Notes: a model not told the origin generated them from the letters alone. A stretch of DNA of 63,801 bases, filler included, from Octopus bimaculoides (GCF_001194135.2; 6 parts of 4 records of this genome joined end to end with filler, not necessarily neighbours in it), one strand, 5' to 3'; counted from the whole stretch's first letter, positions 53,539 to 59,416 are shown. Translations and numbers: made by a program.

Positions 53539-55251
53539 TTAATGTTTGTTTATATCTGTCGTCTTGCATGCAAAACGTCGTCACAAAATCTGTGCTGGTT
53601 ATACTTTCTATAGGTTATAGTTTCTCTAGGTTATACTTTCTATAGGAGTGGTCAAAACCATATTCTAAAAATTCAGTTTGGAGCGTTCTAAAGTTGTCAA
53701 AAATTCAACTGTCAGTTAAGCTCATTTGAAATCTGATACTCTATGTATGAAAGTACGAAAGCCCCAATTTAAATTTATGTGCATTAGGAAATACTTATTT
53801 AAAATACCATAATAAGAAAATGTGAAAACCAGACCATGCTTTAACTTTATTCAACTGATATATATAATAATAAAAATATAAGGCAACGAGGAACTTTGGG
53901 GAAATTTGAGCACACTTGTATTTCTTAAATGTCAGGTGCTCTTCAATTCCTGCCAAAGTACCTCGCTGAATGTGGGAAAGTAAATTTTATTTAAATATAT
54001 AAGGTTATTGGGTTGGAACATACACGGATATACATGTATACATGCATACATACATTTCACATACCTACATATGTACTCACGGACGCGTGCGCACACACAC
54101 ATGCAAATATAATGCTATATATATATAGCGTTATATTCCGTGATGATAATTCTACACCGAAACGATGGATTGGGTATTTCCCATGGGTATGACACACCCT
54201 TGATAAATTTTGGAAAAAAATTGTCAATTAGGCCTTATAATTACAGCCGCTACTAATCTATCAAAACTAGGATTTTCAGATTTTCCCTCCTCTTAATGCT
54301 CATATTAAATATATAATTAAAAAAGAAAATTACAGCGTTGTACATCGGACGAGATTGAAGAGTACTTGGCAGTTGAATGTCTATATGTGAGTTCAAATTC
54401 GTTAGACGTACGTCGCAGATTTTACCAGAGTTCTTTTTTTTCTTCATAAAGCATTAATAATAAAATCATAAAATTTTGTCACACCTATACAAGTACTTAA
54501 TAACTCGCTTAGTTTTCAACGTAAATTATAGAATAACATAGTCTAAATAAATTACATAAATCCAAGATAAAGTCAGTATAAGATAAATGTGATTAAAAAA
54601 CATGAAAAACTAAATATCTGCATGTCTGAAACGAATATTATTTGTGGCCATTATACATGATGTTGATAACTAAGGAAAATAACTGAAATCTTCACCAACA
54701 TTTCTGGATATTTAACGTTATATGTATACTGTATTTAATGTGTCACGAACTATATGTACGATATATAATTCACTAAACATTATATACATTGTATCGTATC
54801 AAAAAGTATCTTGCAGGAAACTGTATGATGTATATTCAACCTAAGATTAATTGGAATAAATGATATAATCTACAAAATCAACATTAATTTTCTTCGATTA
54901 TAACATCGTAATATTGAAGTGTCCGCTAATAATTTATATTTTAACACGTCGTGACTCAAAACAACACAGTTTCGAGAAAAGTTTAGCTTTGTTATGGTTG
55001 TATTACATATGCGAAGTTCCAAATGCGAATTCGTGTGCGTTAATAACAGCGGTTCATCTTTTATTTTGAATCGTCCCCATTGACCATATACGGAATATAT
55101 CTTCGAATTACGTAATAAATTTACAAGATTTTATTTAAAAAAAAAATTACGCTGAAGATTAAGCAGGCTATCAATTACCTATATACGAGTAACAATATTA
55201 CATATCTGGATTTAGGCGAGATATTAAAAAAAAAAATCGAAAAGGTTATTC

Positions 55252-55335
55252 AACTTCACCCTTACGTCGTAATTGAACTCATATTCAGACATTCGAATGT
55301 CAAGCCTCCGTCAATTTCGACCAAAGGGTAAAGCT
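55252..55335 (-). ncRNA. Candidate Pol III small-RNA cassette, copy 1 (84-nt panhandle hairpin)
   Basis: 12-bp closing stem, A-box TGGTCGAAATTG, B-box with one mismatch (GTTCAATTA), T4 8 nt downstream. Confidence 0.45.
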
Positions 55336-56020
55336 GGTAGCGAGGATAAAATTTACGTTTAAGAAAAAAAAAACGNNNNNNNNNNNNNNNNNNNNNNNNN
55401 NNNNNNNNNNNNNNNNNNNNNNNNNNNNNNNNNNNNNNNNNNNNNNNNNNNNNNNNNNNNNNNNNNNNNNNNNNNNNNNNNNNNNNNNNNNNNNNNNNNN
55501 NNNNNNNNNNNNNNNNNNNNNNNNNNNNNNNNNNNNNNNNNNNNNNNNNNNNNNNNNNNNNNNNNNNNNNNNNNNNNNNNNNNNNNNNNNNNNTATATTT
55601 ATATATGTATATATAATAGTAGCACCACAAACACTGGCAACACAGAAACAACCAACCTTTCATGGACTGAGGCACATCCACTATAACTATCATGGCTAAC
55701 ACTACCAATAATAACAAAGCTCTGTTTCCAGAAAACGGGGAAGGATTGGCCCTTCTCAGTTACAGAGAAGCACAGTACAACCGTTTTAATTTATAGGAAA
55801 GCAACCGCTGAAGTTGCGAAGAAATTCTTCTTCTCAGATTGACCATATATGGAATATATCTTCACAATAAGAAATAACTTTATACGATTTAATTTTTTTT
55901 TTAATTACGCTGAAGACTAAGCAGATTATTAATTACATTTAATAGAGTAACAATACGACTTATTAGAATTTATGCTTGACAAAAAAAAAAAAAAAGAAAC
56001 AGAATAAAAAAGATGAGACA

Positions 56021-56102
56021 GTTTCGCCCTTCTGTCGGAATTGAACTCACAATCCAACACTCAGATGTCAAATCTCCATCAAGTTCGACCAAAGAGCGCA
56101 AC
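56021..56102 (-). ncRNA. Candidate Pol III small-RNA cassette, copy 2
   Basis: Closing stem GTTGCGCTCTT/AAGGGCGAAAC, A-box TGGTCGAACTTG, B-box GTTCAATTC, T6 downstream. Confidence 0.5.
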
Positions 56103-56818
56103 CGACAACGGTGCTATAAATTATGTTTAAGTAAAACACTTATTTCATTTAGGTACACTCGCGCGCATGCACACACACGCACACACATATTCAAAAGCAC
56201 GCGCTACCAGAAATATATTTGAATATATGTGTATGTATATACGTCTACACATATATACACGTGTTAACACCTGTGTGTGTTCGTATACGTAGTGGGATTT
56301 TCTGTCGATAGGTATCATTGACAAAACAGACATAGTTTATCTCACTCGTTCTCTTGTGTATGTATGTGTGTGTATGTGAGTGAGCGTGATTGTGTGTGAG
56401 TGAGTGTGTATTTAATTATTGAGAATTTTAGTTAAATAAATCAACCCCAGTACATATTTTAATCCCAGTATTTCTTCCACCGGTTTGTAGTAATAGAGTC
56501 ATTACATACAATATATGTATAAGGATGAATATCTAAACATGTTTAAAATATACCTTCTCTCTCCTTAGTTATTTGCATCTTGTAGAATGTCCTCAAAGAG
56601 TGTCCGTTTAGGACCAACAGAAGTTCATCTTTTATTTTGTATCGCTCCCATTGACCATATACGGAATATATCTTGGGATTACGTAATACATTTGCAAGAT
56701 TTTATTTTTTAAAAATTACGATGAAAACTAAGCAGGTTATCAATTATCTATATACGAGAAACAATATTAAAAATTAGAATTTACACTAGATATAAAAAAA
56801 AAATCGAAAAGCTTATTC

Positions 56819-56902
56819 AACTTCACCTTTATGTCGGAATTGAACTCATATTGATACATTCAAATATCGAGTTTCTGTCAAGTTCGACCAAAGGGTGAAG
56901 CC
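56819..56902 (-). ncRNA. Candidate Pol III small-RNA cassette, copy 3
   Basis: Closing stem GGCTTCACCCTT/AAAGGTGAAGTT, intact A and B boxes, T4 downstream. Confidence 0.5.
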
Positions 56903-57361
56903 AGTAACGAATGTAAAATTTACGTTTAAGAAAAATAATTATTTCATTGATGTACACGCGCGAGCTCAAACACACACACACACACACNNNNNNNNNNNNN
57001 NNNNNNNNNNNNNNNNNNNNNNNNNNNNNNNNNNNNNNNNNNNNNNNNNNNNNNNNNNNNNNNNNNNNNNNNNNNNNNNNNNNNNNNNNNNNNNNNNNNN
57101 NNNNNNNNNNNNNNNNNNNNNNNNNNNNNNNNNNNNNNNNNNNNNNNNNNNNNNNNNNNNNNNNNNNNNNNNNNNNNNNNNNNNNNNNNNNNNNNNNNNN
57201 NNNNNNNNNNNNNNNNNNNNNNNNNNNNNNNNNNNNNNNNNNNNNNNNNNNNNNNNNNNNNNNNNNNNNNNNNNNNNNNNNNNNNNNNNNNNNNNNNNNN
57301 NNNNNNNNNNNNNNNNNNNNNNNNNNNNNNNNNNNNNNNNNNNNNNNNNNNNNNNNNNNNN

Positions 57362-57402
<41 letters not shown>

Positions 57403-58062
57403 ATATATACCTGTTAGCAGGTTTGTCTTTTTAATACGGAATGAGATAAATATATGGACACCCACAAGCAATGCAATTTTATTCAACGAAAAGTTCACTT
57501 CCCAACGTAAAGTTAAGCTATCAATACTACAAGAATTATTGACTGTCAGACAGAATTTTCTAGGGGACTTACTAATATAAAGTTGAACTTTACATACTAA
57601 GAACGGAAGCATGACTTTTGAGACGATATCATATTTTAGTTGGTTGACGGAATGTACGTATATATGTATACATATATCGATATGATACATTTTGGATATA
57701 TTTTACTGAACTGTATACAGTGGAGTAATGGAGACATTATATACAGTATATTTATAAGGATAAATATCTAAACATGTTCAAAATTCTTCTCATCTGTCCC
57801 TTGTTACTTGCTCCCTGTAGAATGTCCTCAAAGAGTGTCCATTTCGTACCAACATAGGTTGAGCTTCCATCTTCTTTTGCGCACATTGACCATGTGTAGA
57901 ATATATCTCCGATTTATGTCATACATTTACACGAAGTTTATCTAAAACAATTTACGCTGATTACTTAGGAGGTTTATCTATTACATATTCTAAAGTAACA
58001 ATATTTATATAGAATTTACGCTTCATAAAATGTAACCCCACCCAAAAAAAAAAAGTTTATTT

Positions 58063-58146
58063 AACTTAGCCCTTATATCGGAATCGAACTTATATCGACA
58101 CTTTCGACTGTCAAGCCTCCATCAAGTTCGACCAAAGGGTAAAGCT
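58063..58146 (-). ncRNA. Candidate Pol III small-RNA cassette, copy 4
   Basis: A-box TGGTCGAACTTG, B-box GTTCGATTC, T11 downstream. Confidence 0.5.
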
Positions 58147-58411
58147 GATAATGGGGATATAAATTATGTTTAAAAACACCAATTATTTCATTTATGCACA
58201 CACGCGTGTTCGCACACACACACACATGTACGCTCGCGCGCGCAGAATTGTATTTGAGCATGTGTGTATGTATATATGTATACATGTATGTGTTTGCACG
58301 TGTGTTTGTTTGTATACAATGTAGGAAATATTGTGTGAAACGGGTAAAGAATTTTCTGTCGTTAGATATCTTTGACAGACAGATATATGAACTCTTACAA
58401 GCAATTTTTAC

Positions 58412-58745
58412 ACATTTTAACCGAATATTCGGTTAAAATGTCTTACGTTTAACCTGGTTCCCATGCATTTCCCTGAAGAGAAGATTACATTCTTAACATC
58501 ACCGATTCCTATGGAAGGTATAATTTGTAATCTTCGAAACATATGTTGAAAATAAAAGTATGCAGTTAACATATGCGTTTTACTCCATTCACTAAATTTA
58601 TATATACTCAAGTACCCAAAATAACAAGGCGTTTCTACCTCATAAACAGGAGTTACACCACAGTCGTTTTGTGATCTTTGCTACCCTGGTATCTATTAAC
58701 CAATTTATTTTGTCCGAGTTAATTATTAACTTGGAGAAAATAAAT
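58412..58745 (+). mobile_element. Short hammerhead-bearing element, copy A (PLE pLTR-like or retrozyme-like)
   Basis: 30-bp palindrome at the 5' junction, then the hammerhead; its 3' ~200 bp is homologous to 60822-61000. Confidence 0.65.
58467..58553 (+). ncRNA. Type I hammerhead ribozyme fold (HHR-3)
   Basis: AUUUCC-CUGAAGA-GAAGAUUACA...UGUAAUCUUC-GAAAC-AUAU-GUU/GAAAAU: perfect 10-bp stem II, palindromic stem III ACAUAUGU, stem I 5 of 6 pairs. Confidence 0.85.
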
Positions 58746-59416
58746 ACATATAATAATATATATATATATGCAGTTTCTTCATCTAGTTCACAGCCTATAC
58801 CTCTTTATTGAAGGTGTTGCCACGTTTTGAGCATACACTCACATACGCACGCTCACACGCACACACACACACATGTGATTCAATGCAGATAAGGTTTATA
58901 AATTGCATACAGTAACTGTAGTTCTTGAGACATTCCATACAGTATAATTTTAATACTAAATATCCAGACATGCGTAAAATTTACTTATTTTTCCTTAGTT
59001 ATCTGCAGCATGGAGAATGGCCTCAAAGTTTGTCTGTTTCGGACATACAGATATTCCATTTTGTATTTTATTTGCCTCTCAATGCTCATGTACTGATAAT
59101 GTCCTTGATTTACGTAATGTATTAAGAGAATTTTATTAGTAAAAAATATACCGAAGTCTGGGCGAGTTATTACATACCTGTATAAGGGTAACGAAATTAC
59201 ATAATTATACTTTAAGCTGGATAAAAAATAAGAATATTTCCGCGTCACGCACAGACATTCAAATGTCAAGTGTCTGTCAATTTCGACCACAGTGCAACGC
59301 TGTAGTCTACGGTGTANNNNNNNNNNNNNNNNNNNNNNNNNNNNNNNNNNNNNNNNNNNNTTAATTAATTAANNNNNNNNNNNNNNNNNNNNNNNNNNNN
59401 NNNNNNNNNNNNNNNN

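Follow-up and report, generated by a model that had tools for sequence, protein, structure and literature searches.

A stretch of Octopus bimaculoides DNA with the same short hairpin again and again raises the question of whether it holds a cluster of small-RNA genes or a palindrome copied passively along with its surroundings. The window that we analysed is 63,801 nucleotides long, filler included (GCF_001194135.2). A preliminary description of its sequence had reported, in an old, indel-rich local array, four complete hairpin copies and a partial fifth, and had likened them to vault RNAs. Here we describe the repeat family to which these copies belong, the fold of its hairpins, and the explanations that could account for both.

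Results

The locus consists of AT-rich, non-coding DNA with at least eight copies of a local repeat, in six of which a hairpin of ~86 nt is kept. Five of the eight hairpin cassettes are those first reported, all on the minus strand and one of them without its 3' arm; the others are an inverted copy (cX), a divergent copy (c0) and a relic. The five copies reported previously are all real, but they undercount the family by the three just named, with which the feature extends from 52644 to 59316. It probably continues beyond the right edge of the sequence piece. The array is indeed old and indel-rich: repeat units measure 0.5-1.2 kb, copies diverge from each other by about 16-40%, and the hairpin units are spaced ~0.8-1.2 kb apart. 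The units are homologous throughout (upstream region, hairpin and a body of ~420 nt), and since these flanks are common to all copies, an origin by duplication rather than transposition is indicated within this piece. Tandem duplication with one inversion probably produced the family. The surroundings are rich in microsatellites and contain other perfect palindromes too.

Two of the eight copies are dead, and one of these opens the array. This relic (52644-52737, minus strand) is similar to the cassette over its full length and scores 21 bits (E about 9e-5) with covariance model R1, which was trained without it; its hairpin fold is lost (z +0.09), which shows that the fold disappears once a copy degenerates. 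The most divergent intact copy, hairpin c0 (53884-53968, minus strand), is followed by a T5 run (53872-53876) and preceded by an upstream region (53969-54053) with a TATA-like TTTAAATAAAATTTAC and a GCGCACGCG/(CA)n block; the nhmmer whole-unit profile matches it at 54053-53927 (E=5e-7). Its box-like motifs are degenerate (TTTGGCAGGAATTGA / GTGCTCAAATTTCC) and its stem is retained (MFE -35.3 kcal/mol, z -5.9), and MAFFT places its pairs into the columns of the other copies. Unit X (54253-54810) is inverted, on the plus strand, and comprises an upstream region, hairpin cX (54335-54416; z -1.97), T-runs (T4 at 54420-54423, T8 at 54434-54441) and a homologous body of about 380-460 nt. Both its cassette (nhmmer, E=1.8e-7) and the whole unit (E=5e-112) are matched by the family profiles, and blastn aligns 54434-54795 with 59234-58877 in unit 5 at 70.7% identity.

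The remaining units are all on the minus strand, and re-reading of the sequence bore out the coordinates and motifs reported for the hairpins of the first four. Unit 1 (54899-55375) contains hairpin c1 (55251-55336; -34.8 kcal/mol, z -5.16), T-runs (T4 at 55240-55243, T11 at 55226-55236) and a body, and its upstream part ends at an assembly gap at 55376. Unit 2 (55793-56329) has microsatellites, GCGCGAGTGTAC, AATGAAATAA and a TATA-like block upstream of hairpin c2 (56019-56104; z -2.33), T6 at 56006-56011 and a truncated body. In unit 3 (56443-56987) the upstream region holds (CA)n, AATGAAATAA (about 56939-56948) and a TATA-like CTTAAACGTAAATTTTAC (56913-56930), followed by hairpin c3 (56818-56903; z -3.51), T4 at 56807-56810, T10 at 56794-56803 and a body. 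The longest upstream region is that of unit 4 (57676-58382), with hairpin c4 (58062-58147; z -4.29), T11 at 58044-58054 and a body. Unit 5 (58861-59316) is the second dead copy: a deletion of ~48 nt removed its 3' arm, leaving the 5' arm and apical part (59246-59302) next to an intact body, and it does not form the family hairpin fold (z -1.18). This unit ends at the edge of the sequence piece.

Both assembly gaps (55376-55593 and 56988-57361) miss every hairpin. In the sense direction the former lies upstream of hairpin 1, starting 40 nt from it next to a T10 run; it spans the place where the AATGAAATAA motif of that copy would be expected, and the sequence beyond it is a TA-rich microsatellite. 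The latter is bordered by (AC)9 where it begins and by (TA)24 where the sequence continues. In the complete paralogous units 2 and 4, (CA)n followed by a TA/TG microsatellite occupies the position matching the gaps, so that the edges of both gaps are compatible with one continuous unit in the same orientation. Continuity across the gaps would fit the sequence, if unproven, and the copy spacings of 768 and 1244 nt contain estimated gap lengths.

All six complete copies fold into the single long hairpin that had been proposed from the near-complementarity of the two boxes (z -2.0 to -5.9), a rod of 23-28 bp in which the arms pair with each other and the tip is variable. The RNAalifold consensus is likewise a single rod, with 28 pairs, 39 nt of 5' arm and a 14-nt terminal loop. 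Copy 1 has an 8x9-nt internal loop, and ~13 of the 22 positions of a would-be miRNA duplex are paired in it. The covarying pairs described previously could be confirmed: columns 11-82 hold A-U in c1 and c3 but G-C in c2, and at columns 10-83 the U-G of c1 is replaced by C-G in c2 and c3. In a sequence-only MAFFT alignment 88% of the main-helix cells are paired, against 30-44% when the partners are slid; 8 of 23 stem pairs have changed on both sides (reached by 3 of 500 shuffles), with 11 cells showing both-side changes (0 of 500). Set against its own 5' arm, the 3' arm of cX, like that of c0, forms 19 of 23 pairs; set against the 5' arms of c1-c4 it forms only 14-16, and the own-arm pairing total was reached by only 6 of 720 arm permutations. 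Between c1 and c0, five of the eight pairs changed on both sides are still paired, where chance would give about 44%. Strictly taken, these covariation statistics are weak given only about three independent lineages (c1-c4, cX and c0).

Consensus folding favours the cassette strand over its complement (-23.1 kcal/mol and 28 pairs versus -14.7 kcal/mol and 19 pairs), and so does single-copy MFE in five of six copies. G.U cells number 17 versus 4 A.C cells. Significant folding is also seen on the complement strand of several copies (z -3.6, -5.5 and -2.9).

The oligo-T tract had been placed 8-9 nt past the cassette end and is found there in all four of the complete copies first reported, three of which (copies 2, 3 and 4) also match TRGYNNARYNNG-N(25-45)-GWTCRANNC, the reported A- and B-box pattern. 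The pattern has no other match on either strand and none in 300 dinucleotide shuffles; as copies 2-4 are paralogues, this amounts to one event. From the start of TRGYNNARYNNG to that of GWTCRANNC there are 44 nt in each of the three, a tRNA-like spacing, and the upstream motif GCGYGTG...AATGAAATAA lies ahead of them as stated. A TATA-like block and a T-run flank all six complete copies, including c0, the downstream flank of which is non-homologous apart from its T-run. In cX and c0 the box motifs are degenerate and the stem is kept, which suggests that the hairpin has been maintained rather than a Pol III promoter.

In sequence, the hairpin is largely no better conserved than its flanks, an outcome that the preliminary description had listed among those that would speak against a small-RNA locus; what distinguishes it is structure. 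Across units 1-4, 47 of 82 hairpin columns (57%) and 93 of 178 flank columns (52%) are invariant (p=0.50), and some body blocks match the hairpin in conservation. The two box-like cores of these units are modestly better conserved (23 of 31 columns invariant, p=0.03 in a post-hoc test). Since hairpin conservation equals that of the homologous flanks, the promoter-like and terminator-like motifs could persist via shared descent alone. The hairpin is nonetheless set apart by its co-varying arms, by the absence of gapped columns (0 of 82 in units 1-4; 15 of 157 for the body, 12 of 41 for the segment just downstream) and by higher GC (0.37-0.47 versus a background of 0.26-0.35). Along its length, both arms are conserved, the loop varies and the basal stem co-varies.

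Discussion

We tentatively interpret the locus as a partly decayed family of hairpin RNA genes of Pol III type that is specific to its lineage. Each unit would have a TATA-like block (TTAAAYRTAAWTTTA, A/T-rich) 10-27 nt ahead of the stem base, a putative A-box (TGGTCGAAMTTG) within the 5' arm, a near-canonical candidate B-box (GTTCAATTCC) in the 3' arm, 44 nt after the A-box and thus spaced as in tRNA genes, and a presumed oligo-T terminator 4-12 nt beyond the stem. From this arrangement we infer transcription, the polymerase and any function of the hairpins: each unit would be transcribed independently, starting near the base of the stem and ending at the T-run, into a hairpin RNA of ~95-100 nt with a 3' U tail, either a structured small RNA or a short-hairpin precursor. 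Of the eight copies, six seem intact and two are dead. Comparable Pol III precursors are known, namely endogenous shRNAs from tRNA-like transcripts that fold alternatively, clustered pre-miRNA hairpins of some retroviruses and the rod-like, A/B-box-containing adenoviral VA RNA; they share with the octopus units A/B-box elements inside the hairpin arms, a T-run directly after the stem and adjacent, self-contained units. The known ones differ in being 55-70 nt or about 160 nt long, viral or single-copy and of documented processing, whereas the candidate units here lie in host DNA at intervals of ~0.8-1.2 kb.

Alternatively, a non-functional palindrome (a MITE-like inverted repeat or a degenerate tRNA/SINE-head relic) could lie in a ~1 kb segment that was duplicated tandemly and inverted once. 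Its A/B-box, TATA-like and T-run features would then be inherited baggage, and the arms would remain complementary through the youth of the copies or through DNA-level template switching between arms. We regard this as rather unlikely, yet several observations agree with it: the entire unit is homologous, with the hairpin sequence conserved no better than the rest, one of the eight copies is broken and another decayed, the complement strand folds too, both-side-changed pairs remain paired only somewhat above chance, and the region has its microsatellites and other perfect palindromes. Octopus vulgaris, moreover, has many unclassified SINE, MITE and Tc1-mariner families, with hundreds of unclassified SINE families in a repeat survey. 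On the other hand, own-arm pairing beats cross-arm pairing by 3-5 pairs in two divergent lineages, the hairpin lacks gapped columns in units 1-4 amid indel-rich flanks, and the cassette strand is favoured via G.U pairs, which would not be expected of a purely DNA-level palindrome. Like tRNA-derived SINE heads and palindromic MITEs, the cassettes have A/B-box-like motifs at tRNA spacing and form a short palindrome present in both orientations. A SINE head is continuous with body and tail and is dispersed among unrelated flanks with target-site duplications, whereas here T4-T11 comes 8-9 nt after the head in the sense direction, incompatible with a head driving transcription of the body, and homology between the copies extends into both flanks, hence duplication and not transposition within this piece. 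No cloverleaf is possible, and no clear target-site duplications were seen. A MITE has terminal inverted repeats bounded by target-site duplications at unrelated insertion sites; the arms here are inverted repeats within homologous flanks, with only ubiquitous TA dinucleotides at their borders. They co-vary, which is not expected of MITEs. It is very unlikely that the cassettes are tRNA pseudogenes, whether as a decayed tandem tRNA array or as arrayed tRNA-derived SINE heads. The 44 nt between the starts of the A- and B-box do correspond to tRNA positions 8 and 52, TTCAATT suits a T-loop, equivalents of U8, A14 and G53-C61 can be read from the sequence, and the T-run comes a few nucleotides past the 3' end. 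However, D-stem and T-stem cannot form, the terminal stem is 2 nt off the acceptor-stem register and the copies keep the rod fold instead. In agreement with the non-tRNA fold claimed earlier, ARAGORN found 0 genes in 52397-59316, and the Rfam tRNA model had no match at E<=10 in the whole piece or in single 126-nt cassettes.

A lineage-specific microRNA cluster formed by tandem duplication would predict a longer, Pol II-transcribed minus-strand RNA cut by Drosha and Dicer, with T-run and boxes incidental; we consider this improbable. The stem of an animal pri-miRNA is ~35 bp, to which the 28-pair consensus rod with its 14-nt loop comes close, and in tandem lineage-specific miRNA clusters, too, duplication of ~1 kb units repeats a hairpin whose arms are conserved, whose loop varies and whose basal stem co-varies. 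On single cassettes Rfam gave nothing but noise-level matches to generic miRNA hairpin models, among them mir-955 (19.5 bits; gathering score 50). MirGeneDB asks for at least ~16 paired duplex positions, and copy 1 falls below this, with its internal loop at the expected duplex end. The duplex region is poorly paired in some copies, and further differences are that one copy is on the opposite strand, that candidate seeds differ in cX and c0, and that a TATA-like block and T-run of its own around every copy are left unexplained. Many novel miRNAs have been reported from coleoid cephalopods (Zolotarov et al., 2022; PMC9699675); the hairpin arm sequences were absent from an incomplete set of the supplementary files of that study, which is weak evidence against a miRNA.

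That the cassettes are cephalopod counterparts of vault or Y RNAs, and hence panhandle RNAs made by Pol III with major vault protein or Ro60 as their partner, appears very unlikely. The layout is that of a vault RNA gene: folds, motif scan and T-runs give a panhandle with paired ends, internal A-/B-box-like motifs, a variable centre and oligo-T, with a predicted product of ~90-100 nt, an upstream TATA-like element (as in the mixed internal and upstream Pol III promoter) and several clustered copies. The 5' arm also has UGGUCGAA, which differs from the vertebrate Y RNA UGGUCCGA by one missing C. A specific kinship with vault RNA, as the earlier vault-RNA-like label might suggest, is nevertheless not supported: the Rfam Vault and Y_RNA models had no match at E<=10 in the whole piece or in single 126-nt cassettes. 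A bulged-C helix is missing from the expected position, UGGUCGAA lying in the stem without the bulged C; the box regions pair into a continuous rod, whereas in true vault and Y RNAs they are unpaired with each other; and dead, divergent members without sequence constraint beyond the flanks would be unusual for such RNAs. "Vault-RNA-like" hence fits the layout only, and family membership is not supported. For the giant squid genome, an ncRNA annotation based on Rfam names tRNA, rRNA, RNase P/MRP, SRP and snRNAs but not vault or Y RNA, and such RNAs may therefore still await identification in cephalopods. As no known RNA family was matched, the repeated hairpin of O. bimaculoides may represent a new small-RNA gene family, for which it is a reasonable if unproven candidate.

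Organization of the hairpin array

The array lies within positions 52397-59316 of the window (NC_068989.1), an AT-rich piece (GC 0.26-0.35) in which (TA)n, (CA)n and (TG)n microsatellites are abundant and the long diverged repeats, upon self-comparison, form one family. Multiple alignment and a whole-unit profile delineated six units of ~450-700 nt each: unit X on the plus strand (54253-54810) and units 1 to 5 on the minus strand (54899-55375, 55793-56329, 56443-56987, 57676-58382 and 58861-59316). The profile also matched a shorter homologous segment at 53927-54053 (minus strand). On the strand where the ~86-nt hairpin, or cassette, reads sense (the cassette strand), a unit runs from microsatellites through GCGYGTG, AATGAAATAA and an A/T-rich TTAAAYRTAAWTTTA block to the cassette, followed by oligo-T and a ~420-nt body. 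Pairwise identity between units is 66-84%, therefore we consider them old paralogues and not haplotypes or assembly duplicates. Tandem Repeats Finder misses the array, reporting microsatellites only, because the period exceeds 500 nt and the units are rich in indels.

The feature is a structurally maintained hairpin family, more extensive than originally noted. The preliminary description listed the hairpins of units 1 to 4 (c1-c4) and a partial fifth copy (59246-59302, minus strand), in which we find the 3' arm to be deleted. These copies stand, and their coordinates, box motifs, upstream motif and two named covarying pairs were all correct on re-check, as was the T-run 8-9 nt from the cassette end. 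Three further copies had been overlooked, making the array larger than stated: an inverted hairpin, cX (54335-54416, plus strand), the most divergent intact hairpin, c0 (53884-53968, minus strand), and a decayed relic (52644-52737, minus strand).

Two assembly gaps, at 55376-55593 and 56988-57361, touch no hairpin, and unit spacings that include them are estimates only. The first begins after T10 and the second after (AC)9, both resume in TA-rich repeats, and complete paralogous units have microsatellites where both gaps fall. Given that the gap edges match the microsatellite position of complete units, the flanks are consistent with continuity. The simple sequence at the gap edges suggests that assembly broke down there and that no mis-join took place.

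The surrounding DNA holds other repeats as well. A 16-nt unit (GGTTATACTTTCTATA) is repeated 3.1 times in tandem at 53597-53646. At 55616-55825, ~210 nt without homology to the other units take the place of the distal body of unit 2 and could derive from a different repeat, a piece of which was inserted here. Palindromes unlike the cassette occur at 53504-53525 (22 nt, perfect), 58412-58441 (30 nt, perfect, with a ttaaccgaatattcggttaa core) and 58703-58745 (43 nt, 88%), indicating that the region is prone to inverted repeats.

Maintenance of the fold

The six complete copies (c1-c4, cX and c0) all adopt the same rod fold, with an MFE of -25 to -35 kcal/mol and z-scores against shuffles of -5.2, -2.3, -3.5, -4.3, -2.0 and -5.9. 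When the copies were aligned with MAFFT on sequence alone, the most divergent ones had their pairs in columns matching those of the others, and 88% of main-helix cells are paired, as opposed to 30-44% when the partners are slid by 1-3 columns. Changes on both sides are seen in 8 of the 23 pairs, a value that 3 of 500 shuffles equal, and in 11 cells, which none of 500 shuffles reaches. These changes are concentrated in the fast-evolving basal stem, the independent lineages are effectively only three (c1-c4, cX and c0), and when distant copies are compared the pairs changed on both sides are still paired in only 5/8 or 5/9 cases, where chance gives ~44%. A further test, on which unequal rates among sites have no bearing, compares how each 3' arm fits its own 5' arm and those of other copies: in cX and c0 the 3' arms form 19/23 pairs with their own 5' arms but only 14-16/23 with the 5' arms of c1-c4, and only 6 of 720 arm permutations reach the observed pairing total. 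From the covariation and arm tests we would put the significance of the structural signal, as a rough estimate, at about 1% and no better.

The relic aligns over the full cassette and has lost the fold (z +0.09), thereby showing how an unconstrained copy appears. Additionally, the GC content of the six hairpins (53884-58147) is 0.37-0.47 versus 0.26-0.35 in the background. On the cassette strand the RNAalifold consensus has 28 pairs (-23.1 kcal/mol), on the complement 19 (-14.7 kcal/mol), and the cassette strand has the better single-copy MFE in five of six copies. G.U outnumbers A.C among stem cells (17 versus 4), a count biased by the structure having been derived by folding that same strand. 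The evidence leans towards a constraint at the RNA level on the cassette strand rather than a symmetric DNA palindrome.

Gene-like layout

In all six complete copies, including the inverted cX, an A/T-rich TATA-like block lies 10-27 nt ahead of the first paired base, an A-box-like motif lies 8-12 nt past the stem base, and a T4-T11 run starts 4-12 nt past the stem. The stem base is where, judging by type 2 promoters, we presume that Pol III would start. Copy c0 retains the TATA-like block, the stem-base spacing and the T-run although its downstream flank is otherwise non-homologous. The A-box and B-box starts are 44 nt apart, the same distance as between tRNA positions 8 and 52. The combined A-box...B-box pattern, found in copies 2-4 only, did not occur in 300 dinucleotide shuffles; these matches count as one event because the copies are paralogues. 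It is mainly because of this coherent geometry that a small, self-contained gene seems to us likelier than a hairpin that is incidental, yet much of it could reflect shared descent. The A- and B-box motifs are degenerate in c0 and cX while the stem is retained, hence the maintained property is the fold and not clearly the promoter boxes.

Coding potential

We found no sign of coding in 52397-59316, where ORFs do not exceed ~100 aa and none has a Pfam match. One minus-strand frame is open through hairpins 1, 3, 4 and 5 (...YQLYPLVE[IL]DGGLT...SSI[PT]T*; 55262-55375, 56829-56987, 58073-58285 and 58985-59290). We do not regard it as coding: Pfam yielded no match and numerous residues differ between the peptides read through copies 1, 3 and 4, which suggests that a protein product would be under no constraint. 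Similarity at the DNA level most likely accounts for the open frame.

Alternative readings

A palindromic repeat might have been duplicated passively with its surroundings, a possibility that we take seriously while thinking it unlikely. The preliminary description expected a genuine cassette to be better conserved than its flanks, and this largely failed: among units 1-4, invariant columns number 47/82 in the hairpin and 93/178 in the flanks (p=0.50), and several body windows are as identical as the arms. A modest advantage is seen only in the two box-like cores (23/31, p=0.03, post hoc). Passive duplication sits less easily with the gapped columns of the same units (0/82 in the hairpin, 15/157 in the body and 12/41 in the segment just downstream), or with cX and c0 arms fitting their own partners best. 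The ancestral palindrome could conceivably be of MITE origin. A SINE organization was rejected, as the head is followed by a terminator and the copies have homologous flanks.

The hairpin layout resembles that of vault RNA genes, of Pol III short-hairpin or pre-miRNA genes, and of adenoviral VA-type rod RNAs. A pri-miRNA-like cluster would share the consensus rod of 28 pairs with a 14-nt loop, but with only ~13 of 22 duplex-region positions paired in copy 1 we find it improbable. Rfam searches of the whole piece and two single cassettes with the laxest filters gave no family near threshold, and the tRNA, Vault and Y_RNA models were absent at E<=10 from both. The vault-RNA-like identity proposed earlier is thus not upheld as membership in the vault family, Y RNA membership is not upheld either, and a true vault or Y RNA counterpart seems hardly probable at all. 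Descent from a tRNA, to which the box spacing might point, is very unlikely: ARAGORN found no tRNA, and no cloverleaf can be drawn, with D- and T-stems unpaired and the terminal stem 2 nt off the acceptor-stem register, in agreement with the initial judgement that this is not a tRNA fold. Cassette matches to mir-955, CRISPR-DR40, SCARNA18 and similar families are noise far below gathering scores. The equally sub-threshold mir-297 and mir-3149 matches (E 0.001-0.1) are low-complexity artefacts, all on TG/TA/CA microsatellites (52404-52517, 54015-54102, 56155-56387 and 58186-58327).

Outlook

Full-text literature searches with the arm sequences returned a single irrelevant plastid match, and the arms are absent from one part of the supplementary data of an octopus miRNA paper (PMC9699675). 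Two pattern scans of metagenome contigs gave 0 matches and then 1, a 3'-arm 22-mer (L001, 976-997) inside bacterial rpsD (ribosomal protein S4) of an rpsK-rpsD-rpoA operon; the covariance model was negative and we dismiss it as chance. An Rfam-based ncRNA annotation of the giant squid names neither vault nor Y RNA, and a repeat survey of Octopus vulgaris reports hundreds of unclassified SINE families; therefore, both readings, RNA gene and repeat, have a plausible prior in a cephalopod host.

We tentatively read the locus, at somewhat less than an even chance, as a cluster of hairpin RNA genes of Pol III type that is specific to the lineage and in which several members are no longer alive. A bolder and rather doubtful version is that Pol III transcribes each hairpin autonomously, that the A- and B-boxes are the two strands of the stem, and that these RNAs make up a lineage-specific family not described before, which might serve as the missing vault/Y-type structured small RNA of the lineage or might supply small regulatory RNAs independently of Drosha. 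If untranscribed, the array would be an ordinary segmentally duplicated palindromic repeat, and mainly a warning that duplicated DNA can carry along A/B-box-like motifs, T-runs and apparent covariation as a set. The hairpins can credibly be put forward as a candidate new family of small RNAs, in a lineage where annotation is poor. If transcribed, they would add a novel family of structured small RNAs to an animal lineage whose ncRNA annotation is very sparse beyond the universal families, and would exemplify, in a host genome, a Pol III gene in which the promoter boxes base-pair with each other to make the stem of the product.
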